Notes: generated by a model from the letters alone, not told the origin. A DNA stretch of 64,000 bases from Diplonema japonicum (GCA_964019335.1 OZ025670.1:434001-498000), one strand, 5' to 3'; shown: positions 4,731 through 50,060, numbered from the stretch's first letter. Numbers and translations: made by a program.

Positions 4731-5018
4731 TCAAACTATTCCAGCACTGCTATCAGCGAAAGGTATTCCTATGATTACGATTATTGCGAGTCTGAGGCAG
4801 GCAACCACGAGGAGGAGGACGAAATCTTCATGTACAAGACTGAACACTGCGGCAAGAACTCTGTACGTCTGTTTGCAAAACTCCGCAAACCAAAGAACAA
4901 CCCTCCAAAGTATAGGCGGCAGCCTGTTACAAGACGAGCCGCTCCTGTCCCCTTCACTCTGACGAAGGAGGTTGCTCCCTCCTTGTCCTATGCTGATGCT
5001 TTGCGGCATACATCTTGA
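3309..5018 (+). CDS. Tandem paralog (copy 2) of the uL1-domain protein
   Basis: Shares near-identical blocks with 1444-3231; the L1-like core is more diverged. Confidence 0.6.
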   Translation: MEILQRFFNKCRVEAALVNVLKGPSVKAVPKKVWRMLWLLRERRCAECEYYDINEDLAEIVLQFVLKAGLTDTNISLHLTYKFNRRQDKFVRVRTALPHQARTELQIGVVCFSSNEETTVRDIGLIPITVDDVRKCRKRRRLLKRLFEPFDYLFCVDNYIRNYRRLVSPYANRMRHPAIYSDKADLKRLKQECYHLAQYASWKPGCVIGHTGLTAQQLHENLHTVLSAILCEVPRRKYQYITAGIQATFGEYQRIIGKVTKTPFPMRPSSLYQSLYVSVATGNVADLKERVAHLPGGRYKRLSGFQLQNTLGFALEESADLEVVRTLLNAKGLIFDRGSSLVMKALRSKHLETEKVELLLRSCPNIWVCSKCLEYAFAVKGVKVMVEMGRMVKEVQQTQMWRGLHGIRPTRRSARLVLRGYGEQVDVEGVEFKLAALWVLYKVCLGKGLGSNTVLIIKSMLGTDLETAMYGDWYSNYSSTAISERYSYDYDYCESEAGNHEEEDEIFMYKTEHCGKNSVRLFAKLRKPKNNPPKYRRQPVTRRAAPVPFTLTKEVAPSLSYADALRHTS

Positions 5019-25025: not shown

Positions 25026-25088
25026 TTAGATGTAGATGTATTATGTTCTTATTTGTTCTCATTTGAATACAAGCCAACAGCAGGCAAG

Positions 25089-26419
25089 ATGGGATGCTGC
25101 CAAACGTCGTGTGCGGCGGACGACGCGGAGAAGGAGGACGAGACCATCCAGACACCTGTGAAGGGGAAGCTGAAGGAAACGCTTCTCCAGGAACCGGAGA
25201 ACAGCGAAGGTGGTGACAAGGTGATCGCCATCTCAAAGAATGTGTACCTGAGCGAGAGGGACAAGGCTGTTGATGGTGGGAAGGGTAGCTACCGGTGGTA
25301 CGTGGATCTGGGGGGGTGGGAACCCGATGGCGGCGCCCAGGGTGAAGAATTCCAGTTCTTGATGTCATTGATCAAGGAGGAAAGGGAACGGGAGGGCGTC
25401 ATGCGGTACACGTACTTCGCGGATCAGAAGCGGGCGTTGGTGAGCAGGTTGATGGCAAGGACCGTGTGCAGCACGGCTTTGCAGATCAACCCGCGTGACG
25501 TGACCATCGCAAGAACGAAGGGCAGCAAACCCTACCTGGCGACACCTGTGGAGGCGGAGGCGGTACCAAACTTCAACTTCAACATTTCACACGACGGGGA
25601 CTACGTGGTGCTGGCTGCGGATGGGTTCTGCGTATGTGGAGTGGACGTGGTGGCCCCAGGGTTCAGGGCATCAAGGGATTCCTTCTCAAAGGAGTTCACC
25701 ACACAGGAGTGGGATCTGATCAACAGCAGAGAGAACGATGAGGAAAAAGACAAACTCTTCTCTCTCCTATGGTCGTGCAAGGAATCATACACGAAAGCAC
25801 GCGGGGACGGCTTGAAGTTCGAGCTTGCAAGGGCTGAGTTCAGCGTTGTAGGCGGTGATGATGGCTTCGAGACCAACGAGCCCTTGACGCTCGTGGTAGC
25901 TGTCGACGGTGTGCCAATGAAACGTTGGATATTCTCATCCATGTTGCTCCCAGACGGCTATCGGGTAACAGTCGCTCGTGGGCCTACCTCAGATATTGTT
26001 GACGCACTGGGCGGGTTCACAGCGACTCTGAAACGCTCCATCGACTCCTTCACGAACTCCGAATGGGGTGAGCTTCTCGACACCCCGCAGCCTGGCTTTA
26101 CAAGGATCCCCATTGGCTTCCTTGTTCCACCCTCCAGGCACAATGAGTACACTGTGGTGGGTGGTGTGCTGCCTCCTCCTTCATTCCTCCCAGTGTCGCC
26201 TATTTACACACCGGTTGCCAAGTACGGCAGATCACTGTCATTCCCACGGCCCCCAGCTGGGTTTATGGGCTCTGCAGGGTTTTCACCTAGAGCAAGGTTG
26301 CTCAGAGATGAGGAAGAGGTTTGTCGGGGGGGGGGGGTAATTTTTTATTTAGTTCTCTTTTGTTTTTTTTTTCTAAATAAAAACAACGACAGGTGAGCGA
26401 GGTAGAATACGTCTCGTAA
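25089..26419 (+). CDS. Sfp/AASDHPPT-type 4'-phosphopantetheinyl transferase; probable last intron 26319-26392
   Basis: SKPYL, FNFNISHDGDYVVLA, CGVDVV, FSLLWSCKESYTKARGDGL (WxxKExxxK). Confidence 0.9.
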
Positions 26420-28622: not shown

Positions 28623-28909
28623 CTTGTTTGGGCTTTATTTTTTTTTTTTTTTTTTTTTTTCTGGGAAGGAGAAAAAAAACTTTAAAAGAGAAAAGAGATA
28701 CAAACAAAAAAAAAAAAAAAAGAAAACAAAAGAAAGAAAACGAAAAAGGGAAATTGCTCCCGCAATTAAAATGATGTTATTATTATATTTTTTTTTGTTC
28801 TCTTTCTTCTTCTTTTTTTTTTTCTCCTCTTTTCTCTTCTTCTTTTTTTTAAAAAAAAGAAAAACGAAAAAGAAGACTCACCACAGGCGGCGGGCATGGT
28901 ACCCGAAAC

Positions 28910-31900
28910 ATGGCGGAAGTAGACAGGTGGCGACGATGGAGGGATTTAGAAAAGAATGTCCTGAACAAAGGAGTGGTCCTGCTGGACGGCAGCGTCGCAA
29001 CGGAAGTACAGCAAGTGTGCGGGGCGCAGTCGATAGATGAGAAGATACTATGTGCAAGGGCAGCGGTGGAGCATGCAGAGGAAGTGCGCGGCATCCACGA
29101 GACGGGGCTGCAGAGCGGCGCGCACATTATCATTGCAAACACGTACTCAACCTCCAGAACAGTGATGGGGGCTGCTGGCTTTGCCTCTGAAGCGGTGGCG
29201 TGCACAACGGCATCTGTTCAAGCAGCCCTTGAGGCTCGCGACAAGTACTCCCCTGCCTCATTGGTCGCAGGGTCCATCTCTTGCCATCCGCCTCTTATGC
29301 CCATTGGAGCTGAAGTAGCACCAGGCACGTGGCCTTCTGCTGCTGAAGAAGTCGCCAATTTCCAAACGCACGCCAAGCTCCTCGCCGACACAGGTTGCGA
29401 CGTCCTTGTGGTTGAGATGGTGTGGGACACACATCACGGGACACGAGCACTCGAAGCAGCATGCTCTGTAGGGCTCCCTGTCATCCTCTCTCTAGCAATA
29501 CCATACTCTGACACTTCCAAGCATGGTTCGCGTCTCCATGAGTCTACCGAGCCCCTGCGGCTTGGAGGTACTAGCGACACCCCTCTAACAGAAGCCGTGG
29601 CAGCCTTCATCAAGAACCGTCCCAGGATCGTGGCCATGTGTATGCATCACACTTCAGTCAGACTTGTGGGACGTGCCCTTCAAGCTATCCGTGACGGGGG
29701 CTGGACTGGTGTGCTTGGCGTTTATCCTATGTCCGGAACCTACAGCTCTCCTCTCTGGCACTGCAGCCCCCTCGATCCCCGTGCGTTCCTCAGCGCAGCC
29801 CAGACATGGGTGTGCAACTATGGAGCACAGATGATCGGCGTAGGTTATGGCCTGCGTGCCTCGCATCTGCAGTACCTCACCAAGCACTCACAGGTTCTTG
29901 TTGATGAGTTCCAAGAATCTAAAATAGAGCAGCTGCACCGCGCTGTGTCCCAGCAGCGGGTGGAGGCCATCAAACAGCTTCTCGACCACTGCGACACAAG
30001 ATCGCGCACGGGGCGGACAGCCCTCCACGTGGCCTCCCGGATCGGTGATGCTGAAATAGTAGACATGCTTCTTGATGCGGGTGCCGATACGACGGTGAAG
30101 GACAACTTCAACCTTACGGCCGCCGACACTGCTATGCTGTGTGGGCACACTGAGGTGCGGAACCAGATACGGGGCCACTCCCAAGGGCCGCGGAAGGTCT
30201 GTGTTGTATATCTCGAATCGCTCAAGGAACAACTAGGCTTGAATCTGAAGCACATTGAGAAGAAGAATGAGGTGCGGATAACAGGCGTGGCACCGGGCGG
30301 TGCAGGTGCACGATGCGGCGTTGTCACGGGTCTGATCCTTCTGATTGACGGCCATGAAGTGCACACGCTGCAAGAAGTCGTGGCGCAGCTGGCGGCCATT
30401 AAAAAGCTGAAACGACATAGTTTCTCGATTGTCATCCAAACCGACCCCCAGTTTGAGGCGGGTGCTGTGGTTGAGGTGCTGAAGGATCTTATAGTGGCTG
30501 GGAAGGTTGCTGTGAGGCAAGGGGCAAGTGCGATTGTGCAGTGTCAGAAGAAGGACAACGACGGCGGACGGCGCGTGGTGCTGACGGGAATGGATCGAGT
30601 CGACGATCGCACGGGCCCCCTGGGTTCCATGCCTTGGGAGATAGCCCATGTCAGTGCTGGAGATGTGAGCCTCTCTGTGTCGGTGGACCTTTCAGGGACG
30701 TACTACGACTCGTGGTCCTGCGAGCAGATAGTTGTTGCCAAACGTGGTGGCGGCGGGTTTGTAGTGAGGTGGTCCTCGAAAGCCAACAACGCAGTGATAT
30801 CGACTAAAGGCCCACTAGTCACGTTCAGAGGGAAAAACGGCGAAGGCATGTCCGGGAACTGGAATGGCACGGCTGTGAACTGGGACAACGGGTCGTCATG
30901 GGTGTTGGAGAGGGGCCGCGTGGACAGGCAGCCTCTGGAAGAGGTCAGAAAAGAGCCTATTCGAAGAGAGCACGAAAAGCCGAAGAAGGTTGGCTCGACA
31001 TTATCAAAAATAGGCAGCTTCTTGCGAAAGGGTTTGGAGGACGCGAAGAGCAGCTCGTTGCCTACATCTGCCCCGGCCAGCCCTCTGAAGCTCAAGAGGA
31101 GCGGTTATTCCACACCCGTCGAGACAGAAGCGAAGCTGTTAGAAGCTGCGTCACAGGGTGATGCAGAAGGTGTCGCCGAGCTGCTTGCTGTTGGTGAAGA
31201 TGTGCAACAGACGAACAAAGAAGGTGAGACAGCCCTCCACATTTCCGCCCGGGATGGTCTTGCAGAAGTGGCTGAGGTTCTCCTCACATATGGCATCGAC
31301 ACCACCTACAGGAATGTGCAGGGCTTGTGCGCTGCCGATGTAGCTGCCCTCCACGGCAAGACAGGACTCCGCATGCGGCTGCGGGAGGCTGCGCAGGGCC
31401 CTCGTGTCTCGTACCGCATGTCCCTCGACACTGCGACAGAGAGGCTTGGCCTGGACCTCAAGTACAACGAGAAGTGGAAGCACGTCAGGATCACAGGCGT
31501 GAGGGACAGCACTGCCGCAGCCAAGGCCGGTGTCGTTCCTGGCATCCTCATCTCTATCGACAGAAAAAACGTCGGCACGCTCGCAGATGTTGTGCGCATC
31601 GTGAACCCCTTGAAGGGAACGGGGAAGGTCTTCACGTTGCTTGTACAAGAGGAAGTCCCCCCCAGGTGCCCAAACAAGCATAAGATGTCACGCGCATCAG
31701 GCATCCCAGACGACATTAAGGCCTACATGCCTGCCGCGGAAAGCGACCTTGTGTTGACATGCGATATCTGCGAAGAAGAAGACTTACAAGACATGGACCA
31801 CTACTACCACTGCATGCAGTGCGAGCATGACGTGTGCAAGGAATGCTGCAGCGTCTCTGAGTTCACGACAGGGAAAACCATTGATGTGCTGTCTGACCTC

Positions 31901-33437
31901 ATCTTTGGCGGTGTCACTGCAGTGCCTGCCGGGACACAGGGCAAGGTGGCAGGCATCCACGTGGACGGCACGGGGCAGCGGAGAATCATTGTAAACGCGA
32001 AACGTGTGGACGGCAGGGGCGGGGCGATCGGGGCATTCTCCCACGAGGTGATGCTCACTCTCGGGGAGCAGCTTGAAGAAGAGCACCAGCCCGTCCAGAA
32101 ATGGAAGGTCGTGTGGGGAGCTGGTGTATTTGTTAGGGAACGGCCTGATACACATGCGGCACAGCTAGGGCTGCGCAAGTGCAGCGAAGTAGTAACGGCA
32201 CTCGAGCAGCATGGAAACTGGATCCGCATAGAGTCGGGGAACAACACCACTGAAGAGTGGATGCTCGTGGAGGGCTCCGAGATTGGCCTTGGCACGCTGC
32301 TGACGCGCCATGACCCTACGGCCACTGATAATGAGTCGACTGAGTCGTGCGTGTCATTCACGCCGCCGATGCAGCCTGAGGCACCAATGCCAAGAAAACC
32401 GTCGTTCGCAGGACTATGGAGCGGCCGTCCTGAGCAAGAGAAGTTGAGAGAAAGGTGGCGCGCACACTGGGCTAAGTACAGCACCAGCGAGGACCCAGGG
32501 ACGTTTGAGCCCCCTGTGCTGGAGGCGACACGGCGGGTGTGGGTGACGTCAGACATCCACATCGACCATAAGGCCAATCTGATGTGGTTGGAGAGCCTCC
32601 CGCAGCACGACGGGGACGGGGTGGCCTACGCGGAAGGAACTCTGATCGTTGCAGGGGATGTGTGTACAAAACTGGAAAGCATCCGGCACGCGTTCAAAAT
32701 ATTAAAGAGGAGCTTCCAACATGTGATGTACTGTGTGGGGAACCACGAGCTGTGGCAGTGGGGGAAGGACGTCCCGGACTCGGTCGAAAAATTCTTCTCG
32801 ATAATGGACGTGGCGCATGAGGAGGGTGTGCAGACGGTGCCGTGCGTGGTGGGCAGTGTTGTGGTGTGCCCGCTGCAGAGTTGGTACCAAGCGAACTTCT
32901 CCGAGAACGACGGGGGGAAGCTGGACAAGATGATCGAAGTGTTCGACGGTGGGTGCAGGTGGCCGGCGTGTGTCGGCGACCCGCTGAAGGAACGCAACTC
33001 ACTCCACGACGGCATCGGGGAGTTCTTCTTGTCGCTCAACGCGCCCCTGCTTGACAACTGGTGTGCACGAGGAATGGTGGTGTTATCCTTCTCTCATTTT
33101 ATACCCAGACCGGACTTGTTCCCAGGGTACAAGAGGTTGGACAGAGTGATGGGCACCAGGGCACTCGAGACTATAATACGCATGATTGGCTCGTCAGGTG
33201 TGAAAAAAAAAAGAAAATAAAAAAAAAAAAAATAAAAATAAAAATAAAAATAAAGTTCATTGCTTCGGCCACTCCCACTTAGACATAGACAAAGTAGAAG
33301 ACGGTGTGAGGTATGTCCAGAATAATCTGGGCTACCCCAGAGACCGATCCGATCCTAAGATGCCTCTTGTATGGTTTTTTTTTTCCTCTTTTCTTTTTGT
33401 ATATGCACAACTACAGGCCGTCTGGGACGCATTCTAA
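28910..33437 (+). CDS. Fusion protein: homocysteine S-methyltransferase-like + (ankyrin-PDZ-like)x2 + Cys-rich zinc finger + SH3b-like + calcineurin-like metallophosphoesterase; introns 33198-33255, 33369-33416
   Basis: LLDGSVATE, GAHIIIANTY, VAGSI; GRTALH/GETALH; CDIC...HCMQCEHDVCKEC; VFVRERP; SDIHID, AGD, GNHE, SHF and spliced GHSH. Confidence 0.8.
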
Positions 33438-34431
33438 TCACATTCGTTTCCATCTTTTTTTTTCTTTTTTTTTCTTTTTCTTTCTCCCTTCCCTCACATG
33501 CCTTCGTCGGGGTTCCGCTTCAGTTTTTTTTTTTTTTTATTGTATTCGAGTTGCGGAATGTTCACGCGTTCTACTCATCGCCCGCCCCCCTTAGGGCTAT
33601 GTTGGCAAGGAAAACGCGTTTCCAAGCTTTTTTTTCTTTCTTTTTTTTTTTTCTTTTTGAAAATAAGGAAACGGAAACAGAAACGTTTCCTTGTTTTGGG
33701 GCCGTTTCTTAAGAAGAGAACACGTTTTTCTCTAAGAAGGAATATGGAAACGGAAACGTTTCCCCGTTTATTTGTCAGCATAGCCGCACCCCTCCCCCCT
33801 TCTTTCTTTTTCCTTTGATTTTTTTTACAGGTTCTGAGATGAACATGCTTGGACCAGTTATAACTTTCATTGGTGTACAAACAGGCAGAAGCTCCTGAGT
33901 GGTCTTTTCTTCTTGTCTTGTGGACAACGTTAACGAACTCAAACAAAAAAGAAAAATCTGCTGTTTTCGGGTAACATCTGTGCACATTTTTTTTTTTTTT
34001 TCGATCGCAATTCCTTCTGGGGGGCCCCCCATTGAACCAACATCTTAAAGAACGAGCTGTCTGTCAGAGTTTTTTTTTTCTTCCTTAGCTTGCAGTAACA
34101 AAAAAAAAAGGAGGGGGTGTACTTACTTACCCCATTTTTATTCACTTCCCGATTCCCCCTTTATATCTTAATTTCCTCTTCCTTTTATCTCCCCCTCCCC
34201 TATCATGAAATGTTCAAAGACTTGCCTGTGGATTTTGTGCCAAAGAAGAAGACAACGAGAGGGGGAGGCAAGGGAAAAAAATAAAAATGAAAAAGAAAGG
34301 AATTGATGCGAACCCAGCCGAAGACTCAGTTTGGGCACACACCGGGAGAAAAAAAAAAAATAGATAAGGTGTGTGGTTAAGATTGTATTTTTTTTTGACC
34401 CCCAAGAAACGTAAATGGATGGATAGGTACC

Positions 34432-34463
<32 letters not shown>

Positions 34464-35256
34464 TTGTAGGGAAGGAGAAAGTGAACAAGGAAAAGGAGAA
34501 GCTGAAAAAGAGCCTTGTTCCCCCCCCCCTCATTTTTTGAAAGATCAAAAAGAAAGAACATACAAAAACTGCGAAAAGGTTCACACGCGCGCTTTTATTG
34601 TTTTTGTTTTCCCCCTTCTCATTAGAAAAGGTGATCGGGGGAAAGAAAAGGGGGAAGGGGATCCTATGCTTTATATGAACTCGTCCTGGTGGGGATTTTC
34701 TTTTCTTTTTTTTTTGTCCACAACTGACCCTGCTGTGCGGCAGAAACAGAATATTGAAGGATTTTCCTAATTTTTACTATACGCATGGGTTTTCTCCAAA
34801 ACTGCTAGGCTATGATTCACTATCCTTTTTTTTTTTTTTTTTTTTACAAAATATTTAAATCTTTCAAAAAATGATTTTATAACCATATGCAACTTGTGCC
34901 GAGCAAAAGACTTTCGCAGCTTTTTAAAAACATTTTTTTTTTTTTTGCTCGCGCGAACAGCAAAGACGTATTGTCATAAAGAATGATTTTTTTTTTTTGC
35001 ATGAACAAGAAAAAAACAAATTGATAATGAATTTTTAGTACTAAAAAGAGTAGTGGTAGCATTGTTGGGCTTATCCTTCTACAGGTTAACCCCCGGCTGT
35101 GCACAAACAATAAATACATCATGTCTGTTGCCGTCCTTTTCGAGGGCGAGAAGCTCGAGCTCTTGCTGTGCCGGCTGTGCACAAACAACACAATAAACCG
35201 ACTCTTTACCCCGGCAAATACTCAAAAAGAAATTTTTTTTTGAAACCCCGGGTGGG

Positions 35257-35289
<33 letters not shown>

Positions 35290-35564
35290 CTCAAGACAGT
35301 TTTCCACCGGACGAGCTCATATCACTAATCTTTCACGGCTCCCCCCCTTTTTTTTTAATGTCTGGAAAAAGGGGAGGCACCCCCCCCTACAACCACACCC
35401 TCTGTTCCTTTCACAAGTAAGGTACTTTGGTTCTTTTCTGTTTCCTTTTATTAAAAAAAAAGAAAAATTATATCCCCCTTCTCCTTTTCTCCTGAAGCCC
35501 AACCTCAAACACATGTCCAGCGTCACAGTGTACACCCGACAAAAAAAAAAAAAAAAAAAAAAAA

Positions 35565-38500
35565 ATGTCGTCGATGACAAGCCCGAACCTGATAGTAGGA
35601 AGAACATGCAGACTGTCAGAAGCCATTGGCGGGCTCCTCAGAGAAAAGGGCGTTAAAGGTTGTTTCGCATCCTGTGGGTTTGACGTAGATTCAATGTTAA
35701 GAGGGTTGAAAGAAGGAGGGCTGCCTTGTTGGCCAGTCGGGGACGATGGAGAGGGACAAGCAGCAAGGTGTGCGTGGGCGGTAACAGGCCAGCTTCAAGT
35801 TGTGGTAAGTTCTGGCACCGTCCCAATAGGGATTAACAACTCCCCTATATTGGTGCTCAAACTTGAGCAAGCCACTGACAGCCCTGCCACCCCTCTGTCC
35901 ATTTTTTCTTCAGTCAATTCCATTGGATCAAACGATGACGGTGATGTTCGTGTTGTCACCATACCCACCACTCTTGTTTCAGCACCCTTCACCATCCCCA
36001 TTGATTTTACAATGCCGCAGAGGATGGTACGATGCGATAGAACATCACCCTTATCTAAGGGGCAAGGCCAGTCTGGCGATCACCTCATGTCGTGCCTCGG
36101 GGAATCTGTCCCTGAGGCAGCTCTGTTCATAGCCGACGATGCTGAGATCGTTGCCAAGGGCATAGAGCATTTAAAACCAACGCAAGATATCCTAAAGGTT
36201 CCAAGCGACACAGTCCACCACAATCTCTCTGGCACTGTGCAGTGCAAGGACCGCACGGTCGTAGCCCTCGTCAGCGACGTCTCGCTGATGAAGTACGGGC
36301 TGCAGCTTTCCTTCTCCTCCCTTGCACGAAACTTTATAATCGTCTCCCTTCCTTCCCAATCCCGTTCTTCAAGCCTCGAGCATCTCGCTTCAGCGTTGAA
36401 CTTTAAATTCCTCGAGACCGATGACCCTTCTCTGCTTTCGTCATCGCTTGCTAGCTTCAATGGGTCACTTTTGGTCAGCTGGACTCGTTTTACGAGTGTC
36501 CCTCTTCCTCCCCCGTCGCACTTAATGAATGCTATCTGCAACGTGCTCTTGGAAGCTGGCGTGAAGCATATATTCACACCTACCCAGGGAGATAGACATG
36601 TTACCGTCCACGGGGCAACACATGCCGCAAAAGGAGCCGCCGAAACATCGTCGGCCTCCGCTGTCATCTGCACCCTTGAGGACGCTTCCCCGCTCCCTCC
36701 CTCAAAACCTGTTGTGCAAGTCATCCTATCTGGGGAAGACCCTGCTTGTGTTGAAGCGTCTTTCAATGCAAAGCAGACTCTTGCAGTCACAGAGCCCTCA
36801 CGTCTCTCTTCCGCCTTACGCCATGCTGTGGCTATTTCCCTTGTGCCCCCATCGGCTCCCGTGACGCTGATCCTTCCACGGGAAATGCTGCCGTGTGGGG
36901 AGCCTACCGACTTCTCGTGGCCTTCTCTTCGGGATCCTGTTAAGGATTTGTCTCGCCTTACGGAACTTAAGCTGCTTTGTTCTACTACACCCACACGACT
37001 TCACATATCGTGCCCCCTTCCTGCTTCCCTCCAGCCACACGTCGAAGCCATCGTGAAGGCTTTCGACATGACAGTCACCACCGCTGCTGTTGCTAAAGGC
37101 AGCTACCCTGAGACGGCATCGAACTGGCTCTGGTCAGGTCCTGTTGTCCCCCCTGAACTGCAAGCAGCACTGGTCCCTTGCAGGGCTTGGGTTGTCCTTG
37201 GTGACGGGGTGCCCCCCTCACCTGCTCCGCATGTACTCACCATATCCCCGAGCCCACAAGCTGACCTGCTGTGCGACGTTGAAACCTTCGTCACTGAACT
37301 GGCGCTTGTCTCCGCAGACCAGAAGCCCAAAGCACCAGTTGCAGCCGATCTTATCAGCAAGTGCCACGTGAAAATGAGCTCTCGTCTGGCAGCCTTGCGA
37401 GGCGAGGGTGGCCCGACTCCTTCGTTCATCTTTGCGAAGTTGCAGGAAATACTACCGCAAGACACTGTGTACTGTTTGGACTCAGGGATGTCATACGAGG
37501 CAGGTGTTGAAAACCTGAGAGTTGGGAGCACCGATGACGTGATTATCCCCACTGACCCTAAGATGAGGGGCGTGGCATTACCGGCGGCAGTGGGACTCAC
37601 CTGCAGGACGCAGAAAACAGCGGTAGTGGTGTTGGGCGATGGGTGCTTCTTGGAGTCGTACTCCGCACTGGTGACTGCAGCAGCCATGAAAGCGCCTATG
37701 ATCATTGTGCTCTTGAGGGACGGTGAACGTGCATTGCTTTCGGTGCAGTATAAGCTTGCCGGGAGGCGAGTCCCCGAGCACAACGACCTTCCTCCTTTTG
37801 ACGTATCTCACGCAGCAGCCCTTTGCCGTGTAGCATACAGAAAAGTGACAAAGGATGATATGGGTGCAGCGGTGGCATGGGCCCGGGAACGCACAGAAGC
37901 AGGCGAAGGACCTATTTTGCTTGAGATTCGGCCAGCTCCTGAAGTGCCCTTCTCTGTCATCGCGTCACTTCTGCCGCAGAACAACATAGAGGCCAGCACC
38001 GAACCGCTGCCTGTGAAGCAAACAGCCAGCAGCCCGAAGAATGTGACGCTCAACAAAGTGCAGCGTTTAGTGCGTGCCACCGTCGAGCCCGGCGACTTCT
38101 ACACCCCCATTGTAAGGCAGCGCGATACTTCTTTTGCTGTAAACGAGCTACAAACCAGAACTGCTTCCAACAAGCTAGCAATCTGGGACATCCTATGCCA
38201 CGCAAGGGACACTGCGCCACAGCACACTGCCTACGTCGAGGGTGACGTGAAGGCTACGTATGAAAAGTTCTATTCGCGAGTTTGCCATGTTGCTGATTAC
38301 TTGCAGAACGTCGCGAAAGTGCAACCGGGAGAGAGGGTAGGGGTTATGACGCCTAACATATACCAGTGCCTTGAAGCACATTATGCCATCGCAGGTGGTG
38401 CCAGAGGGGTTGTTCTGAATCTTAACCAGAGGTTGAGTGCGGAGGAGCTGGCGTACGTGCTGGACGACTCAGAGCCTGTGTGGATCGTCACGGCGAGTAG

Positions 38501-41500
38501 GTTTGCGCCACTAATCATCGACGCTGTGAAGAAGAGTAAAAAGACCGTTAAGGGACTGCTGTGGGTCGGTGACGTACCGTCGGCAGTAGAGGCATCGATC
38601 ATGCACCACGATTTCGACGCAGTGGCCAACGGAGAGGGCACGGAGCTTGACGTCGAAGGTTTCACGCCGCCACCTGGCGACCCGAGCGACGGTTGTGAAA
38701 TGTACTACACGTCCGGCACAACGGGAAGGCCCAAAGGTGTCATCCTCACACAGAAGATAGTGGTCCTTCACGCACTGGGCTGCATGATCGAGCACCGCCA
38801 CCACTCACGTGACGTGTGGGGGCACATTGCCCCCATGTTCCACCTGGTTGATGCCTACGGGATGTTCTCGATCACATGGGTGTGCGGAACACAAGCCTTC
38901 GTCCCTGTTTTCAGTGCTGCCAACTCCTTGTCCGCTATTGAGGACTACGGCATCACCGTCACGAACATGGCATCAACAATGGCCACGCTGCTGCTCACGC
39001 ATCCCGGTGTTGAGAAGAGGAACTTCCGTTCGCTTGAAATGATTTCCTGTGGCGGGGCACCCCTGAGCAGGGAGACCACGCTGCGCGCTATTGCTGTGTT
39101 CGGGTGCGAGATCTTCCAAAGTTACGGGATGACAGAGTGCTGTGGGAAGATATCCATGTCCCTCCTGAACACACCTGAAGTGCAGAAGCTTCCTCCACAT
39201 GAACAAGTGGATCTCGTGTGCAGTTCGGGGAAACCATTTGGCCTCCCTGGGTTTGAGGTGCGTGTTGTTGGCAATGACGGCAATGTGGTGGCGCCTATGA
39301 GCGGGGATGTGGGTGAAGTGCAGATAAAAGGGCCAACTGTCTTCAGCGGGTACCACAACAGACCCGAGGCGACTGCCGAGTCCTTTGACGGAGACTGGTT
39401 TAAGACAGGAGACCTTGCGACAGTGGGCGCTCACGGTTATCTGAATGTTTGCGACAGGAAGAAGGACATGATCCTCACTGGTGGGGAGAACGTCTATTCC
39501 GTCGAAGTGGAGCGCGTCCTCGCCGACCACGAGGAGGTCAAGTATGTGGGTGTCTACGCAATTCCGAACAGCCTCCTGGGCGAGGTTGTCAAGGCAGTCG
39601 TGGAGCTCCACCCCGGGGCAACCATTACATCTACCAAGCTTAGGCGGCACTGTGAAAAGTTCCTTGCAGACTATAAAGTTCCCAGAGAGCTTGAGATCGT
39701 CTCTAACATGCCCCTCACAGGCACCGGCAAGGTGGCAAAAGCGGAGCTGAAGGCGCGAGAAGCCGCAAAGAGAGAAGAAAAGGAGAAAGCAAGGAAAGAG
39801 CGTTCTACACCTGCACCTGCCCCTGAAGCACAGCCACCTCTCACCAACGAAGTTCTTCAGAACGACACATACCACGTTACATGGAAGCCTGAGAGTGTAG
39901 GCAGAGGCAACAACATCACGGGGCACTGGGTTGTCCTCTCTGACTCAGACGGCATTGGGAACTTACTTTCTGAACAGCTGGCCTCCGAGAGCGCGAATAT
40001 AGCAACGCTGGACTACTCTGCATGCGATCCGTACTCGGTGGACACCTTCAAGAATGTTCTCAGGAAAGATACGGAAGGTGTTGTTTTCATGTGGGGCCTG
40101 AACTGCAGCCCTGTTGGTGGTGAGAAGGTGACCTCTGACGTAACGCAGCAGGTCCATTCGTCGTTGCGATCGCTGTTGGCACTGCTGCAGGCTGTCTTGT
40201 CTGTGAAAACAAGCATGAACATATGGATTGTGACTAGAGGTGCTGAAGTGGACATCCCTGGGGTGCCATCGCAGTGCACGCCTGTGCATGCTTCGCAGCA
40301 GGCTTTGTGGGGTATTGCTAGAGTGATACCTGCCGAGAGGTCAGGGCTTCGGTGCCGCGTGGTGGACTTGTGCCCAGGAGACAGCAGTGTCGAGGCCAAT
40401 GCTTCTTCCCTACGATCGGAGATTTCTGCGCCAGACGGAGGAGCGTCGCACGGAGAGTCCGCTTGGAGGGCACGCAGAAGGTACGTACCACGCCTTCAAC
40501 TATTGTCGATGCCTTTTTCTGAATCCCCTAGCCTCCGGTCGGATGCTACATATATCATTACGGGAGGCCTTGGCGGGCTGGGGAGAAATCTTACGCGCTA
40601 CATGGTCACGAGCTGGGGTGCCAAGCACCTAGTCTTGGTGAGCAGGCGGAAGCCCGAAGACAGCGTTGCTAAAGAATTGCAGGATCTTGAGGCAAGGTTC
40701 TCTGCTACCATTAGAGTTGAGTCAGCGGACATCTCAAAGGTGGAGTCGACAGAAGCTTTCTTCGCTAGAGTTGCCAGTTCCATGCCCCCCATCAAGGGTG
40801 TCTTCCACCTGGCGGGTGTCGTCGACGATGGTAAGATTGAAGATCAGACGTGGGACAGATTCTCAAAGGTTCTGGTGCCGAAAGTGGATGGCTCCATCAA
40901 CCTTCATGTTGCAGCTGAGAAACTGAAGCTGGACCTCGACCATTTTGTGTTGTTCTCGAGCATTTACGGCGTGCTAGGATACAGGGAGCTCACGCACTAC
41001 GCTGCGGCCAACGCATTCCAAGATGGGTTATGCCTGGCTAGAAGGCGTATGGGTCTTCCCGCCCTTGCGGTCAGCTGGGGCACCTGGGCAGACGCTGGGA
41101 TGGCGTCGAGGTTTGGTTCTGGCTTCGAGTCTTACTGGAAAGGGTTGGGGATGGAATTCGTGCCTTTAGAAGGTGGGATGCAGACACTCGGTTCTTTGTG
41201 CATGCAGGCAGCAGGGTGCATGCAGGCAGCAGCGGCTGACAGGGTCGTTCATGCGGGGGTCTTTCCTGCAAGCTGGGAAAGATACACAAAGCAACGCAGA
41301 CAGCTTGGCCCTCACCCTTTGTGTGTGGACCTCGTCGAGTCTCCGGCGCAAGCTGTCACTGCCTCTACAGAGAATCTGCCTCCCCTTGTCAAGGAGATGT
41401 TGCAGGTGCCACCCGAGCGGAGGCAAAAAGCAATGGAGACAAGCATCATACGCATGATCCTCGAGCTTAAGGATGAAAGTGACGACGAAGAAGTGGACCC

Positions 41501-44500
41501 TGAACTGCCTGTTGTGGACATTGGGCTGACGTCAATGCACGTCATCGATCTCACGGTGCAGCTGGGAGAGGTAACAGGGATCGAGGACATCTCCCCAACA
41601 CTTGTTTACGAGTGCGTCACAATCGCCGCTGTGGCGGAGAAAATCCTTGAAGACATTCGTGACCACCTGGACAAGGCGTCCAGTGCGGCACCGCAGTCTG
41701 CAGTGGACCCCAACGCCACGCAGCTGGTGCAAAGGCTGCAGGGGGCGTCACCAGCTGACCGCCCGAAGATCTTGCAGGATGCCGTAATCGAGCTTACAAA
41801 GGAGCTGCTTGATGATGAAGATGTTGAGGTATGCTTTGAGCTTCCTATGTTATCGCCACAGATCGACGTGACAGCACCTGTCGTGGAGCTTGGGCTGACC
41901 TCGATGCACGTCGTCGACATGACGCAGCAACTGGTATGGCACCACACCACACTGCCTCACACTGCCACAGATTGATATCACGGGACTCGATGACCTGTCG
42001 CCGACCTTCATCTACGAGTGCGTCACAATCGCTGCCGCTGTCGCCCAGTTGCTTGAAGAGCTTCCCCTGTCAAATGCCGTTCAAGCAACACCACAGCCAA
42101 CTTCTTCACCTGTAAAGGAGGCACCTGACCAGTCTATGGGGCCTTTGGCTGTGGTCGGGATGGGATGCAGACTCCCTGGCGACGCGAACACGCCGTCTGA
42201 ATTTTGGGAAAACCTCGAAGCCGAGAGGAACTGCATTGTGCCGACACCAGGGGACAGGCCGTCTAATGGCAGGCCAAGCGGCTACCTGAGCGCTAAAACA
42301 ATTAAAAACTTCGATAGCCAAGCGTTTAATATTTCTGATGTTGAAGCAGCGTGCATGGACCCACAGCAGCGCCTACTGCTGCAGGTGGCTAAAGAAGCTT
42401 TTGAAGATGCAGGGATCAAAGTGGAAGAGCTGCAGGACAGAAGAGTTGGTGTGTTCGTGGGTGTCAGCAATGTGGAGTACGGTGCACTGTGCATGAAAGC
42501 GGTTCAGGAAGGGAATATGGACCCTCTACCTTACTGCGGCACCAGTTGGCATCTGAGCATTGCTGCAAACCGCATTTCGTATCTACTGGACCTCACGGGA
42601 CCGAGTGTGTCAATGGATACGGCCTGCTCTTCGTCACTTACGGCGATGGACTTTGCTGTAAAGGCACTTCGGGCGGGGTCGTGCTCCATGGCACTGGTGT
42701 GCGGTGCCAACGTGCAGTTGGTGGAAACGTGGAGCGACTGCTTCGAGATTGCTGGGATGCTCTCCCCGACGTATTCGTGCAAGTTTGGTGACAACTCGGC
42801 AGATGGCTACGTACGGGGTGAAGGTGTCGGTGCCGTGCTTGTAAAACCCTTGCAGGATGCTGTCGCTGATGGAAACAACATTTACGCGGAAGTGGTTGGC
42901 ACAGCTATCAACCAGGACGCAAGAAGCAATGGCTTGACAGCCCCGAACCCCGCTGCACAAGAGGCACTCTTGAAAGCTGCATACACAGGCATGGACACCA
43001 ACGATGTAATGTACATCGAGGCGCACGGCACGGGAACGCGCCTCGGAGATCCTATTGAAATGGCAGCTCTCGGACGAGTGCTGGGTGCACCTAAAGACAT
43101 GCCACCCCGCCAGCAGCCGCTGCTCATGGGGAGCGTCAAGAGCTGCATTGGGCATTTAGAGTGCGCTGCTGGTATCGCTTCCATCATCAAGACGTGCCTC
43201 ATCCTCAGCCATGGCAGGATCCCCCCATCGCTGCACTTCAGTACACCGAACACTGTCGTGAGATTCGAAGTATGCTTAAATTTACCCTCAACCCCATTAG
43301 GCGTCGGGACTTGAAGTAGTTGGCCAGTCAAAGGGTACCCGTCCCCTCCCCCGCCCCGCTAGCAGCAGACAACCAATGATTGGAGTGTCTGGCTTCGGGT
43401 TTGGTGGCACCAATGGGCACTGCGTCTTCAGGCAGCACGAGCAGAAACCCATGTATGCCCCTCACGAACTCAAGTTTACACATACTGCAGTGACAAAACC
43501 GCTCTGAAACACTCTGGAAGGTGCCTTGTTCCTATCTCAGCACACTCAGAAGAGTCGCTGAGGTTGACAGCGGAGCGATGGATAACTGTGGCCAAAGATG
43601 CTAACCAGACAGGATACCCTACACTGGCTGACTTCGCAAGGACAGCAGCACTGTACAGGTACCATGGCACGCGAGAGAAGCCTGTCAGAGCGACCGTTGT
43701 TGCTGCTGACATGTCGGAGTTGACTACTAGACTAACAGCGCTGGCGACATCTTCGACGCATCCGTGTGCGCCATCGAACCGTGCTGTGTCTACAGCACCA
43801 AAGGTGGCATTCGTGTTCACAGGACAGGGGTCGCAAACGGTAGGCATGGGACGTGGGCTGTACGAGACGAGCCATGCGTTTGCCAAAGCAATGGAAAGCT
43901 GCGATGAGATCCTGGCCACTAAGAACATTCTCCCCGAGGGCTACACTCTGCTGGGCACTTTGTACGGACCTCCTGAGGCTTGCGAAACGGCTATGAGCAA
44001 CGCCGGGTTTTTGCAGCCAACGCTCCTCTCGGTGGAGTACGCTCTGTCGAGACTCATCGAAGACGAGCTGATGGTGCAACCAGCCGTTGTCATGGGCCAC
44101 AGTCTTGGAGAGATCACAGCGTGTATTGCTTCGGGTGTGCTCACGCTAGAAGATGCCCTCGTCCTAGCAGCAGGCCGTGGTGCTGCTATGGCAGCCGTAC
44201 CAGCAGGTCAAGGTGGGATGGCAGCAGTGAGGTTGGACAAGAAAGAGCTGGACGAATTCCTGAAGGAGTGTGCACCAAAGGTAACCGTTGCGGCAGTTAA
44301 CGCGCCTGGTTCGTCTGTTATTAGTGGGCCACTGGCAGATTTGAAGATAGCGATTGCTGCTTTGAAGGAAAATGGGAAGAAGGTGAGGCAGCTTACAGTC
44401 TCGCACGGGTTCCACTCCATGCAGATCGAGGATGCCTTGCCGAGACTCAGAGACGTGGCATCAAAACTCCGTCCGAGACCCGTCAAGGAGGGTATTGTGG

Positions 44501-47500
44501 CCATCTCGAATGTAACAGGGACTGTCCAGACCAAAACGCCTGACGCACAATACTGGGTAGACCACGCAAGGGGCGCTGTGCTGTTCATGAGTGGCGTCGA
44601 GGCTGCACTCGAGCAAGGCGTCAACGTATTCTTAGAGCTTGGTCCCCAGCCGCATTTGTCAGTGCAGATCAACGGGGTCATTGCCACACACAACAAGCCA
44701 GTTGCAGTGGTCAGCACCCTGAAGGCAGGTGAAGACGAGTCAGAGCTGCTTGGTATCACTGCAGGTGCCCTTCACAATGCAGGTGTTCCACTTCAATGGG
44801 ACAGACTGTGTGGCAGCGGGACGCGTGTCCAGCTTCCCACCACTGCATTTGCGGGTGCAGAGCTGTGGTCTGACGCCCTGCAGCCAACTCGCAGGCAGCT
44901 GTTGGCACAAATTCAGGAACGGGACCCTGCAGGGGTTGTTTTCAACACTGAATGGAAGGAACATCCCGTCAGTAGCAACATAGACCTAAGGTCTAGAGCG
45001 GTGCTGCTCATCTCTGACAACGGCAGCCACAAGGCTCTTATACCTGAGCTTAAAAGCGTTGGGTGTCTTGTTAGCAAGGTGGTCGCACCTCCGACTGAAC
45101 TGTCATCCCAGAAGGTCACTGCCGCGTTGGAGGAGCGCCCGAGGTGGCACTGTGTGGTGTTCTCGTGCAGTGCACCTGATATTCTGCACTGCACCACTGC
45201 ACTGCTTCGTGTTGTGCAGGCAGCACAGCGTTTGAAGAGAGTCGACAGGATCCTTGTACTCACAACTGGTGTGTGCAGCGACAAACCCGGCGAGAATGGA
45301 CTTGACATCAGTGTCGCGTGCCAAGCTGGGTTGTGGGGATTTGTGAAGTCAGCTCGTCTTGAGATGACGAACGGCCCCCTCATGCAGTGCTGTGACAAGG
45401 ACCCTTCCAACACGGACGTCGCAAAATCCGTTGTTGCTGAGATCAGCGCAGAGCACTTCGGGACCGACAACGTGAGGCTTGCTGGCGGTGGTTTTGGAAG
45501 GAGGATCGAACGAGTAGCTGAGGTGAAACGGGTGACAAAGCACAAGTACACGCCACCCCCTGCTGGACCTATTATCCTGACAGGCGGCACAGGTGCTCTG
45601 GGGCTACAGTTGAGCGACTGGCTGATCCGCAGAGGTGCAAGGAAACTTGTGTTGCTGTCGCGCAGCGGAAAGATAGCAAGCAGCAACAGTGGGCTTTGGG
45701 ACGCACTCACCGTGACTAGTGAAAGATTGGGCGCTGAAGTGAAGCTGCAGAAATGCGACGTATCAGACCCGAAGCAGGCAAAGGACATGATCAACGAATA
45801 TGCCGCTGACCTACCACACGGTGGGTTGGTGCATTGTGCGGGTGTGCTGGACGACGGGCTGCTTAGATCGCAATCAGAAGAACGCTTCGACAAGGTGATC
45901 ACGCCAAAAGTGGGGGGTCTGCTGCACATCTTCAAAGCAATGATGGCGCGCACTGTGCGCCCCACGTTGTTCTTGCTCTTCTCCAGCGTCACTTCCTTGA
46001 TGGGGAACATTGGGCAGACCAACTATGGCGCCGCGAACTCGATGCTGGATTCCATTGCACGCCAGTTGCGGGCAGCGGAGTTTCCGTGTACCTCTGTGCA
46101 ATGGGGTCCATGGGGTGGTCACGGAATGGCCGCCTTCATGGATGAGAGTGAAGGTGTGAACACCGTTTGGAAGCCCCTGACGCCTGCCCTAGGTTGGGGT
46201 GCACTTGACGTGGTATGCCAATTATGTTAAACCCACTTCACCGCAGGCCCTGGCGCAAGGTGCTGACCCCGTTCTCTGTGTAAGCGGCTTCAAATGGAAC
46301 AACCTTCGCGAATTCATGTCAACAAGCCCGTGGAACGAGAACTACTTCGGGGACATGGTAGAGGTATGCACCCCGCGCGCTGTGAAACACGTGGCAGATG
46401 TACACCGAGGAAATCGACAGCAGCGTGAGGAACGAGAGCGTTGAGATCCTTGAGGAAGAAGAGTCCGCCACCCCCGTCTCTGAATCAAGCGTTGCAGAGA
46501 AGCTCAAAGTATGTTATAAAAATGTAATAAGCCACGCATCACAGGAACTGCTTAGTAGATACGTAAAACAAGGGTCGCAGTTGCTACCCACTACCGAGCT
46601 TGTGTCCCTTGGCCTTGATTCTGTCGACATGACAGCCACAGCACAGGACATCTCAAAGAAGTTCGGTATCAAAGCGGGTCCTATGCTGGTGATGGAGGCA
46701 AGCAATTTGGCTGAGTTGACAACAACCATAACTGCCGAGCTGGTAAAGGGTAGCAGTCACAAAGCCCCTGCTGTTAAGAAGGTCAAGCGTGCCGAACCCC
46801 GAAGCAAGAACCCGCTGTCACCAGCTGCTGCTGCGGAACAGGAGGCCCTCTCGGAAGCTGATATCTTGGCTGGTGTAATTGACATCCTTTCCAAGTTCGC
46901 AAAGGGTGTGCTAGGCATCACCATGGGCACAACTCTAGTATCCCTCAGTCTGGACTCCGTGGATATGACAGCCATTGCGCAGGAGGTGGGCAAGCGTTTC
47001 AGCATAAAGGCAGGCCCCATGCTTGTCATGGAGGCAGAGATCGTTGCGGATCTAGTGGCCTCCATCCAAGAGGCGGGAGCTAGCCGGACGACTGAGAAGA
47101 AGGCAAGTAAACAAGTGAAAAAGGTAAGCAGCAAGAACGGATTCACGGCACCGCAGGCAACTCTTACCCCTGAGACTTGCTTGGAACAGTTGAAGCAGGT
47201 GCTTTTAAAGTTCGCAAAGAGCGGAGCTGCCATCGAGCCCTCCACAGAGCTGGTGGCGCTCAGCCTTGACAGTGTCGACATGACAGCCATTGCACAGGAG
47301 GTTGCACGGAAGTTCAATGTCAAAGTGGGTCCTATGTTCGTGATGGAAAGTGAGACAGTCGACGACTTGTGCCAAGGGGTCATCGCCAAGCAGCCGGTAG
47401 CATCTCCTGCAGCATCTACCTCGCAGTCCGCAAGGCGTGCTACACCCAAAGCAGCTGAAGCCAACGTCGACCTGCAGGATGAGAACGCGGACTTGAAGTG

Positions 47501-50060
47501 TGACAACGAGATCCTCAAACGACAGGCCCACATCCACAGCAAAGATGCCCCATGGATCGTCGAGGTGACCTTTAAGGTCCTCCCACTCATTTTCTCACTA
47601 CTGGGTTTCTTCGTTGCTACGCTGCTTGCATCCCTCGCTTCGCGTCCTATGGAGGCCGTCATAGACCTCACTAACCAAGAGTGCGGCAAGAATCTGGGCT
47701 TCTTCCTGTCACCTAACGTATATTTCGAGCTCGCCTACAGAATAGCTCTTTTCCTTGTGCTGTTCTTGCTTCTTGGGTGTGTTTATGGCGTGCTTTTGAA
47801 ATGGATTGTGATTGGAAGATTTAAGGCCCACACGTGGGATTCGCACTCGGCATACGCATTGAAGAGGGCGATTGTGCACACTTACCTCGAGATGCTGCAT
47901 AAGATGCTTGGTGCTCTGGAGGAGACGGAGTTCCTTGTATGGTTCTACCGGGCGCTGGGGGCTGACATCGGGCACAACGTGCTGCTGCCGTGGACGTTGC
48001 AGCTGGACTACGACTTGCTGCATATTGGTGACCACGTCATCATGGGATCGCGGACAGGGGCACAGACTTCATACTGCCATGATGGCATAACAGTCACCTC
48101 AAGGCACACTTGGATTGGGGCAGGTACTAGTATATGCAGAGCTGCATATGTGATGCCTGGAGCACAGCTGGGACAAGCTGTCGTTGTGTGCGCGAGGTCC
48201 ACAGCACAGGGCTCTGTCATGTCAGGTGCGACAGTGTACGAGGACAAGGTTCTTCCCCCTGGTGAGCAGCCCCCAGAGGACACAGGCGTCTGCACCTACC
48301 TCCGCACGAAGGATGGCACCACTTTAGCGTCAATCTTCATGCAGTTCGTCGCCGTGGTCTTTTTCCTTATCACGATGGTGATATCCTTCACCTTCTCCGT
48401 CTCATGGTCCCTGTGGGGCTTGGCCATGATCCCTGGCATGTGCAATAATGGCACGCAGGCCACGCCCATCCTGAGCATGGGGAACGTCAACCTGTACCTC
48501 ACCGCTGAAGGCGCCGTTGTGCTTCTATTCACCTTGTGGGTGCTGGGGGGTACCACCAGCATCCTTGCGTTAATATGCAAATGGGCCCTCATCGGTAGAG
48601 TGAAACCAGGAACAGAAAAGGTGACGAAGACTATGATTCTCAGATTCTGGTTTGTGAAGCAGATGATCAACATCAGTGAGAGCTTGTTCATCATGAGCTA
48701 CTTCAGGTACACGCCTATGATGTGGGCGTGGTACAGGCTCCTCGGCATGAAGGTGCCGTGCAGCGCGATCATGTCCGCTTTCGTCAACGTGATCCCTGAC
48801 CTTGTCTCGTCTGATGAGGACGCCTACTTCGGGTACAACCCGCAGATACCGTGCATCGCTTGCGACCCTGCGGACGGTGTTGTCACTTTTGTGAGAACCC
48901 ATGTGGGGGCACGTGGCTTCATTGGCCCTGACGCCATCATGTTGCCTGGGTCGAACATTGAGACCAGAGGCGCTGTGTCCGCGTCAGGGATCGTCGGGGC
49001 GGGGAAGACTATCAGAACAGGCACCACACAGATCGGGCCGAGGGTGACAGTCGCCTTCCGCCCCGAAGCACAGCTGTCTAACAACGCCCTGTTCCAAGTC
49101 TATCTCACTATATTCGCGCTGTGGCGTGCAGTGTGGGACATGTCTTTCTCTATGGTCTCCATCGCAATCTCATTGGCCGCGATGCTCGCTGTGCACGAAG
49201 CAGGCATGGGGTGGTCCTTCTCACTGGGAATCGCGGTTGCCTCAATCGCCTTCTTCTTCACCGTAGTGGTGTCGACGTTGCAGGGCTTGATATCTATCGC
49301 AAGCAAATGGATGCTCTTGGGCAAAGTGAAGGAGGGCGTGCACCACCAGTGGCGGTCGTTCTACCACGCAAGGTGGGTGAACTGTTTGGCAGTTTCGATG
49401 AAGGCGGTGGACAACATGAAGACGATGTACAGGGGGACAGTGGTGATGCGGATGTACCACAGGATGAGGGGTGGAAAGGTAGGGCCAGGGGCGAAGTTGA
49501 TGTGCGCCCCGAGATCTCCGGAAGCTGAGCTAGTGGAGTTCAAGGAAGGGGTGTACCTTAGTGAGGAGAGCGGGCACATTTACGCTCACAACTTTGCAAC
49601 AGGCGACCTGCACTTTGAGAAATCAATAATCGGGGCGGGCGTGAGGCTGCCGACCACCACACACGTTGTACCAGGTGCCACCATCAACGACGGGGTCACA
49701 ACAGGGCCGGGGACGCTGATTCTCCCTAGGGGGATGGAGGACAAGTGCGAGATCCTAATGGGAAACCCATGCAAGCCGTGTGTCTATGAATCGGAAACAT
49801 ACACAAGGCAGGGCAACGGTGTTATCCCCTTGGACTTCACCCTTGCAAAATACAACAAGGCTTTGCTCAGGTCTGCTGATTCAGAAGACACTGAAAACTG
49901 CGATGGTGAGATACACGAAGTGCAGCGTAAGCGTTCTAGTTATAGGCGGAGGAGTGCGCTGCAGGCGTCTCTCTTGCATGGCGATGGTGGGGTGGAGCCC
50001 AGTGACGACGAGGAGATGGAAGTCTTGCAACTTACGTCGGCCGATGCTAACGAGGTGTGA
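35565..50060 (+). CDS. Hybrid megasynthase (~4750 aa): ThDP-enzyme-like x2, A (acyl-CoA ligase type), KR, ACPx2, KS, AT, KR, ACPx3, Pls/PosA-like membrane terminal domain; introns 41829-41861, 41934-41970, 43270-43300, 43453-43490, 46213-46246, 46364-46397, 46509-46544
   Basis: GDG motif; YTSGTTGRPKG, YGMTE, TGD, TGK; TGGLGGLG/YAAAN; GLTS x2; DTACSSS/HGTGT/GHLE; GQG/GHSLGE/HGFHS; TGGTGALG/LDD/YGAAN; LDS x3; three KW..(I/L)G(R/K).K plus left-handed beta-helix repeats. Removing 243 intron nt leaves 14253 nt (4751 codons) in frame. Confidence 0.9.

Follow-up and report, generated by a model that had tools for sequence, protein, structure and literature searches.

To our knowledge, the only role so far described for Pls-type termini is the polymerisation of basic amino acids. 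The enzymes that carry them consist of an adenylation (A) and a thiolation (T) domain, dispense with condensation (C) and thioesterase (TE) domains, and contain three acetyltransferase-like domains (C1-C3) and six transmembrane segments (TM1-TM6); the characterised members link their monomers through a side-chain amine (review PMC8506220). Here we analyse a gene of Diplonema japonicum, contained in a stretch of 64,000 nt (OZ025670.1:434001-498000; hereafter the window, whose numbering is used throughout, with the gene on the + strand), in which a terminus related to that of Pls and PosA follows a polyketide synthase (PKS) module. We propose that the gene encodes a spliced, single-extension PKS which probably, though far from certainly, releases its acyl chain through this Pls-type terminus to a nucleophile at the membrane.

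Parts of the gene have counterparts elsewhere. Reductive loading modules of the order A-ketoreductase (KR)-carrier are found in bacillaene PksJ and in the cereulide and valinomycin synthetases, and the A-KR-carrier unit here would likewise reduce a keto acid starter; with modular type I PKSs such as DEBS the gene shares the catalytic motifs and order of one reducing module, ketosynthase (KS)-acyltransferase (AT)-KR-acyl carrier protein (ACP). In contrast to these systems, it has no TE or reductase (R) release domain, its carriers are multiplied (two plus three), it is membrane-embedded, and its first KR follows a complete ANL-type A domain. A further likeness, drawn from domain lists, is to PKSs of Karenia brevis (contigs 54805, 78360, 15957 and 34829, with an 'LbH' or 'tpp' domain, and a tpp-A-KR-PP-KS contig; PMC5725682) and of Chrysophaeum taylorii, listed with an 'LbH' domain (PMC10366177): in these, PKS modules are followed by a left-handed beta-helix (LbH), and the K. 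brevis contig just named has a like loading cassette. The two papers call such domains 'unusual', with no link to Pls, no transmembrane (TM) helices noted and no role proposed. An earlier note on this DNA knew of no characterised system of this architecture, and our literature searches likewise gave none; those on TIGR02353, on Pls together with PKS and on diplonemid PKS found nothing relevant, and polyketides go unmentioned in the D. papillatum genome paper.

The same note had joined five open reading frames (ORFs) through seven short introns into one long frame, and the computed splice bears this out: seven GTATG...CAG segments of 31-38 nt sit at frame changes or within frames, and their in silico removal gives a frame of 14,253 nt, made up of 4750 codons and one stop at the end (the length and the number of stops come from the joined sequence, while homology searches were run exon by exon). 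In an exhaustive HMMER search, the top match to the last 842 residues was KAJ9444505.1 (P0001; Diplonema papillatum, 4912 aa, labelled "EryA1"), and an Artemidia motanka Trinity transcript (P0003) holds the same architecture, with agreeing spacing, in a single 4400-aa ORF. The gene is laid out as follows.

35565-50060 (+), whole gene: 8 exons, 7 introns, 4750 codons plus stop at 50058-50060
35496-41972, 41923-43311, 43363-46227, 46193-46441 and 46386-50057 (+), five stop-free frames, from ORF reading
41829-41861 (+), intron 1: 33 nt, in frame, GTATG..CAG; no gap between exons 1 and 2 in P0001 (2200/2201)
41934-41970 (+), intron 2: 37 nt, frame-shifting; ACP1 and ACP2 are collinear across it
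43270-43300 (+), intron 3: 31 nt; collinearity with relatives
43453-43490 (+), intron 4: 38 nt; collinearity with relatives
46213-46246 (+), intron 5: 34 nt; collinearity with relatives
46364-46397 (+), intron 6: 34 nt; KR2-to-ACP spacing within ~5 aa of orthologues
46509-46544 (+), intron 7: 36 nt, in frame, AT-rich; called from motif and composition only, with spacing that fits P0001 and P0003

Aligned with P0001 by BLASTP, exon 1 ends at residue 2200, exons 2, 3 and 4 cover 2201-2224, 2225-2668 and 2669-2716, exons 5 and 6 cover 2720-3636 and 3639-3675, and exon 8 covers 3720-4905; this alignment thus confirms junctions 1-5 with near single-residue precision. The 37 aa of exon 7 have diverged too far for an alignment, but the spacing fits, at 78 aa here versus 83 in D. 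papillatum. Exon 4 alone matches the C-terminal tail of the KS (GFGGTNGH), filling profile positions that are absent between exons 3 and 5, and ACP2, which introns 1 and 2 split, lines up with its paralogue ACP1. The segment from KR2 through the ACP to the terminus is also uninterrupted in the relatives P0005, P0006, P0008, P0034, P0101 and P0105. The claim of one polypeptide is thus upheld by exon junctions that are all collinear with full-length orthologues, including the single-ORF A. motanka transcript, and these comparisons strongly support a single spliced nuclear gene of a diplonemid-type euglenozoan. Introns of an identical class, often C/A-rich, join the frames of other genes in the window (15113-15150, 16790-16826, 63038-63072 and 63286-63319), so that the GTATG...CAG segments read as the ordinary intron of this genome; intron 7 is, by the same comparisons, the weakest-supported of the seven. 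A look-alike at 39542-39571, in frame within exon 1, was rejected as an intron, since it encodes a conserved stretch of the A domain, and a second lies inside exon 1 at 41047-41074 (+); with such look-alikes, a scan for the motif alone would predict too many introns here.

Domains were called with Pfam and NCBIfam, the Pfam E-values of the PKS domains running from 1e-72 to 5e-48. Their order is a thiamine diphosphate (ThDP)-like region, an acyl-CoA-ligase-type A domain, KR, ACP, ACP, KS, AT, KR, three ACPs and a Pls/PosA-type terminus, with matches to TPP_enzyme_C, AMP-binding and AMP-binding_C, KR, PP-binding, KS N and C, Acyl_transf_1, KR, three times PP-binding, and Hexapep. All the families that the earlier note had expected (TPP_enzyme, AMP-binding, KR, PP-binding, KS, AT and TIGR02353) were matched, TIGR02353 with a score below its curated cut-off. 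The loading and extension modules comprise:

38211-39731 (+), A domain of the acyl/aryl-CoA-ligase (ANL) type, aa 883-1389; A3 core YTSGTTGRPKG at 38706-38738, A10 lysine within 39717-39740
40545-41093 (+), KR1; PF08659 at 8e-55; TGGLGGLG, VDD (B-type-like) and YAAAN; preceded by a structural pseudo-KR from ~39855
41469-41639 (+), ACP1; PF00550; atypical GLTS attachment motif at 41523-41540
41742-42060 (+), ACP2, paralogue of ACP1; GLTS at 41892-41909; interrupted by introns 1 and 2
42142-43239 (+), KS; Cys codon at 42625, His motifs at 43018-43038 and 43144-43161, GFGGTNGH tail in exon 4 (43397-43420)
43810-44772 (+), AT; PF00698 at 1e-52; GHSLGE at 44095-44112, HGFH within 44401-44418
45571-46116 (+), KR2; PF08659 at 5e-48; TGGTGALG, LDD (B-type-like) and YGAAN
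46545-47399 (+), three tandem ACPs; PF00550 in three stretches; LDS motifs at 46614-46631, 46950-46967 and 47265-47282

The core motifs of A, KR1, KS, AT and KR2 are present, as are all five ACP serines, and the features that define a modular type I PKS are found together: KS Cys-His-His, AT GHSxG with its Arg, KR NADPH motif and Tyr, and ACP Ser. Motif reading placed the KS cysteine (at 42625) and both histidine motifs, the AT GHSLG and the YxAAN of both KRs where they had been noted before, all of them intact, and a Pfam scan of the exons agreed with the prior statement that TE, C, R, dehydratase (DH) and enoylreductase (ER) domains are absent; nor did it find an aminotransferase domain. The A domain is complete, its closest solved structures are feruloyl- and fatty-acyl-CoA synthetases, FadD13, MenE and oxalate-CoA ligase, and it is, judged by its sequence class, not of the amino-acid nonribosomal peptide synthetase (NRPS) type. 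The GLTS motif of the loading ACPs is conserved among orthologues as GL(S/T)S, and the HGFH of the AT resembles the malonyl-type HAFH. Taken from its motifs, an intact, membrane-anchored, single-extension type I PKS is strongly supported.

The terminus is the last domain, placed straight after the three ACPs and with no Condensation or Thioesterase domain.

47548-49829 (+), Pls/PosA-type terminal domain; TIGR02353 at 4e-41; three TM-TM-KWxxxG-linker-RxxGxxxG-LbH units
~47553-47645, 47715-47822, 48312-48416, 48486-48596, 49131-49208 and 49203-49304 (+), TM helices, from hydropathy
49587-49589 (+), family-invariant His (YAHNF, unit 3), from comparison of conserved residues

TIGR02353 is matched at 141-142 bits with model positions 42-694 of 695 aligned. 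The curated NCBIfam cut-off of 423.1 bits is not reached, and because the score is far under it the terminus is best described, by this profile, as a divergent sister subfamily of Pls/PosA, homologous but not equivalog. The hydropathy profile shows six TM segments (peaks 1.8-2.9) in three pairs. After each pair, which closes with KW(x)3G, come a helical linker, an RxxGxxxG motif and then a beta-helix, and the three units can be aligned with one another. An AlphaFold2 (AF2) model of the terminus (37 sequences; mean predicted local distance difference test (pLDDT) 82.4, predicted template modelling score (pTM) 0.85) likewise has six long paired helices and three beta-helical units. Foldseek matched the soluble units to single LbH enzymes only (probability up to 1.00, TM-score on target 0.45-0.49), which were gamma-carbonic-anhydrase-like proteins, serine acetyltransferases and maltose/galactoside O-acetyltransferases, and neither Foldseek nor sequence search found a Pls-like structure in the PDB. 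Thirty-five of the 46 residues that are at least 75% conserved across the family are retained, among them the sole invariant histidine.

The full Pls anatomy found here supports homology to the Pls/PosA terminal domain. What the earlier note called a Pls-type terminus therefore stands as to the TIGR02353 match, the six TM helices, the three LbH units and the conserved residues, and falls short at the curated cut-off. As in Pls/PosA, a carrier feeds a C-terminal machine of six TM helices in three pairs and three LbH units, without TE or C. The enzymes differ in what lies before it: in Pls/PosA (Streptomyces albulus, Epichloe, Corynebacterium) an amino-acid A-T pair, here an acyl-CoA-ligase-type A domain and a PKS module, with the KS-AT-KR module intervening between A domain and terminus. 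The trimeric LbH acyltransferases share the fold of each soluble unit, and the conserved histidine could act, as in them, as a general base; in contrast to them, three non-identical units here lie in one chain, each on a TM pair, and the donor would be the attached ACP.

Searching with the terminus returned 980 proteins at E <= 0.001, of which the best 150 were examined; these are mostly A-T-terminus proteins of ~1300 aa. The domains of relatives were read by phmmer with this gene's own domains, which gave as PKS-linked members P0001, P0003, P0005, P0006, P0008, P0022, P0034, P0101 and P0105, and the named sources of this family include Diplonema, Artemidia, Rhynchopus, the green alga Cymbomonas and the pelagophyte Chrysophaeum. 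The order A-KR-ACP-KS-AT-KR-ACPn-PlsC (PlsC denoting the terminus) is found in KAJ9444505.1, the Artemidia transcript, Cymbomonas tetramitiformis KAK3235901.1, Chrysophaeum taylorii KAJ8613644.1 and the metagenomic P0008, P0105 and P0022; database labels, which are automatic, read 'EryA1' for Diplonema and 'hypothetical protein' for Cymbomonas and Chrysophaeum. Identity to the D. papillatum protein is 40-70%. Over the terminus it is 43% for Diplonema, 35% for Artemidia and 26% for P0008, other relatives having 21-29% over the region, and over the KS exon it falls, among five full-length relatives, from 70% (Diplonema) to 40% (Chrysophaeum). The architecture is thus, from these matches, not restricted to this genome, and its orthologues are public but unstudied. 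A homologue search with the P0001 terminus returned only P0001 itself.

Each of two trees contains a branch, with 97-99% support in the Shimodaira-Hasegawa-like approximate likelihood ratio test (SH-aLRT), that separates the PKS-linked termini and eukaryotic fragments from the A-T-terminus proteins. The fragments on the PKS-linked side come from Aureococcus, an MMETSP transcriptome and Telonema; the window's protein adjoins that of D. papillatum, and its closest relatives are D. papillatum, Rhynchopus euleeides and A. motanka. A search of the D. japonicum genome (62.5 Mb, 132 contigs) for Pls-type termini found two further genes, both of the classical (partial C)-A-T-terminus type (1693 and 1990 aa):

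L013:2986-8064 (+), contig C19, classical Pls-type gene, from profile search
L012:2037-8006 (-), contig C107, classical Pls-type gene, from profile search; a carboxylesterase-family domain follows the terminus

Both group on the A-T-Pls side. Since the genome's own A-T genes fall on the other side of the tree, the PKS-linked terminus represents, on this phylogeny, a long-standing subfamily of its own rather than a local fusion of recent date. Within it, an AT-like domain follows the terminus in Chrysophaeum (P0034), P0105, P0022 and P0007/P0151 (MMETSP), which form one moderately supported branch (89% SH-aLRT); the diplonemid proteins are without it. The Cymbomonas model P0101 ends inside unit 2 of the terminus and is probably a truncated gene model.

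At the other end of the protein, the earlier note had read two ThDP-like units in tandem.

35565-37406 (+), degenerate N-terminal region, aa 1-614; collinear with the PYR - PP' - PYR' - TH3 units of the family; no Pfam match of its own
37407-37949 (+), ThDP-binding PP domain, aa 615-795; PF02775 at 1e-13; GDG at 37635-37643

Statistical support extends in this protein to the PP domain only, which matches PF02775 (TPP_enzyme_C) at 48-52 bits against a cut-off of 21.9, and benzoylformate decarboxylases and acetolactate synthases in the PDB at 1e-7. It shares with that family the GDG...N(D)G signature, with GDG at aa 691-693; RDGE (D719) falls opposite RNGE in the structurally solved benzoylformate decarboxylase 4q9d, and the Mg-ligand Asn would accordingly be replaced here by Asp. 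The region before it is degenerate, with no Pfam match in aa 1-610 and, in the AF2 model of the N-terminus (mean pLDDT 39.9), pLDDT below 50 for aa 1-614, the PP domain alone being confident. A hidden Markov model (HMM) built from four orthologues does match residues 3-88 and 420-548 in collinear places, at 17.4 bits versus <=3.1 in 200 shuffles, and in an alignment of full-length relatives anchored on the A domain residues 1-610 appear weakly homologous to the family's double ThDP-like N-terminus. The duplication itself is clear from the sequences of better-preserved relatives: a 630-aa ThDP enzyme ORF of this genome (L009) matches P0008 twice, at 34-194 (PYR, 2e-9) and 410-902 (whole enzyme, 2e-23), with a degenerate PP-like piece between the matches, and Cymbomonas is similar. 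The window's protein, Artemidia and P0008 retain the ThDP-Mg motif, whereas Diplonema has GDT...N and Cymbomonas has lost it; the ThDP-like N-terminus is degenerate in the three diplonemid proteins, and the Chrysophaeum type begins at the A domain. In the phmmer scan of relatives, the window's own domain found a TPP match in P0008 only.

Set in order, these domains outline a possible reaction course. The ThDP region may supply or modify the starter, an acetolactate-synthase-like reaction giving a 2-hydroxy-3-keto acid being a coherent idea. The acyl-CoA-ligase-type A domain would then load a carboxylic acid onto the GLTS-type ACP pair, probably a keto acid, as the KR in the loading module implies, and KR1 would reduce its keto group. 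KS and AT, the latter with its HAFH-like motif, would add one malonyl unit, and KR2 (B-type LDD) would leave on the three tandem ACPs a short acyl chain with an (R)-3-hydroxy group and further hydroxylation. Because TE, R and C domains are missing, release would fall to the C-terminal Pls-type machine, whose six TM helices and three LbH acyltransferase-like units with the conserved His would take the acyl group off its ACP thioester and pass it to a membrane-located nucleophile, be it the next monomer, a foreign acceptor or an amine.

Which nucleophile this is separates the readings of the terminus. It is possible, and we put it forward tentatively, that a free monomer or the growing chain serves, so that an oligo- or polyester of the polyhydroxy acid is made and extruded; a hydroxyacyl monomer and its polymerisation are plausible, the grounds being just the domain set and the Pls precedent. 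The terminus could instead perform a single transfer of the hydroxyacyl chain to a membrane or surface acceptor such as a lipid head group, glycan, polyamine or protein, a course that we consider rather doubtful. The soluble units do match simple O- and N-acetyltransferases, the subfamily stands apart from the polymerising A-T-Pls branch, and the AT-like domain after the terminus of some relatives hints at more complex transfer chemistry. The donor, moreover, is probably an (R)-3-hydroxyacyl-ACP, given the B-type KR2 motif, which is the donor class of LpxA and LpxD, LbH enzymes that transfer (R)-3-hydroxyacyl groups from ACP. Yet one LbH unit would suffice for such a transfer, whereas the six-TM, three-unit machine and its motifs are retained as in the polymerases, and the three tandem ACPs, an arrangement typical of high-flux synthases, suggest bulk flux. 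With the whole three-unit, six-helix machine conserved and the carriers multiplied, we slightly favour polymerisation over single transfer. Amide bonds as in Pls, from an amino-bearing starter acid and yielding a cationic poly(amino-hydroxy-acid), seem improbable: the characterised family members do join their monomers through a side-chain amine (PMC8506220) and the family-conserved residues are retained here, but the A domain is of the acyl/aryl-CoA-ligase type and not an amino-acid NRPS domain, the KR of the loading module implies a keto acid starter, and Pfam found no aminotransferase domain.

Release of a PKS chain through the Pls-type terminus must itself be set against several observations, and these weigh against it. 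The known Pls-family polymers all use an amine nucleophile; the branch of the PKS-linked termini stands apart from A-T-Pls, so that their chemistry may differ from that of Pls; the TIGR02353 score is one third of the cut-off; and the ThDP region is poorly conserved here, its catalytic Glu not being assignable. As to the gene model, a search of sequencing runs gave only genomic contigs holding the stretch (five runs, two studies), splicing thus being drawn from comparison, and introns 7 and, less so, 1 are in frame, so that the ORF stays unbroken if they are retained. That the runs are genomic would also suit two or more neighbouring genes, a PKS ending at ~46440 and a separate ACP3-PlsC membrane protein from the ATG at 46398 acting in trans; that ATG opens the last long ORF, and the genome also codes for free-standing A-T-PlsC proteins. 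This arrangement is nonetheless very improbable, since a canonical 34-nt GTATG..CAG intron lies exactly at the frame change, where removal of intron 6 cures the shift immediately 5' of ATG 46398 (a possible separate start), KR2-ACP-PlsC is one polypeptide in all orthologues seen, including the Artemidia transcript ORF and intron-free metagenomic ORFs, and the spacing agrees with theirs within ~5 aa. A pseudogene, an assembly chimera or bacterial contamination is less credible still and can be set aside almost entirely: only the unusual size of the gene and its bacterial-type domains suggest it, whereas the ORF is intact with all motifs retained, the spliceosomal introns belong to the class typical of the host, three other diplonemids carry orthologues, and the stretch is contiguous and identical to the window, with no joints, in contigs of four runs from two studies. 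The reading that we retain is that of one spliced PKS gene with release at the membrane.

The surroundings of the gene contain one candidate partner, 9 kb upstream on the same strand.

25026-26393 (+), Sfp/AASDHPPT-type 4'-phosphopantetheinyl transferase gene; PF22624 at 9e-27, PF01648 at 3e-11

Its product is, from its domain matches, a possible activator of the five carrier domains. Directly upstream of the synthase lies a 1455-aa frame (28853-33217, +), an unusual fusion of homocysteine S-methyltransferase, ankyrin repeats, PDZ, SH3 and a calcineurin-like phosphoesterase, and the intergenic stretch ahead of the gene (34001-36000) has 42% G+C versus ~55% within it. Nearly all long frames of the window are on the + strand, in keeping with the polycistronic clusters of genes that have been reported from diplonemids (PMC10161547).

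A Pls-type machine behind a PKS module implies a new route of polyketide release, by membrane-coupled acyl transfer, and a possible new kind of biopolymer or surface modification. More speculatively, and in our view rather doubtfully, the family may represent a widespread, eukaryote-specific class of membrane-embedded 'polyketide polymerases', in which a one-module PKS makes the monomer and template-free polyester formation is coupled with extrusion; if so, an unrecognised extracellular or surface biopolymer would exist in diplonemids, pelagophytes, prasinophytes and perhaps dinoflagellates. The family is present in ecologically important marine protists, and a gene model with mapped catalytic residues makes the question directly testable.

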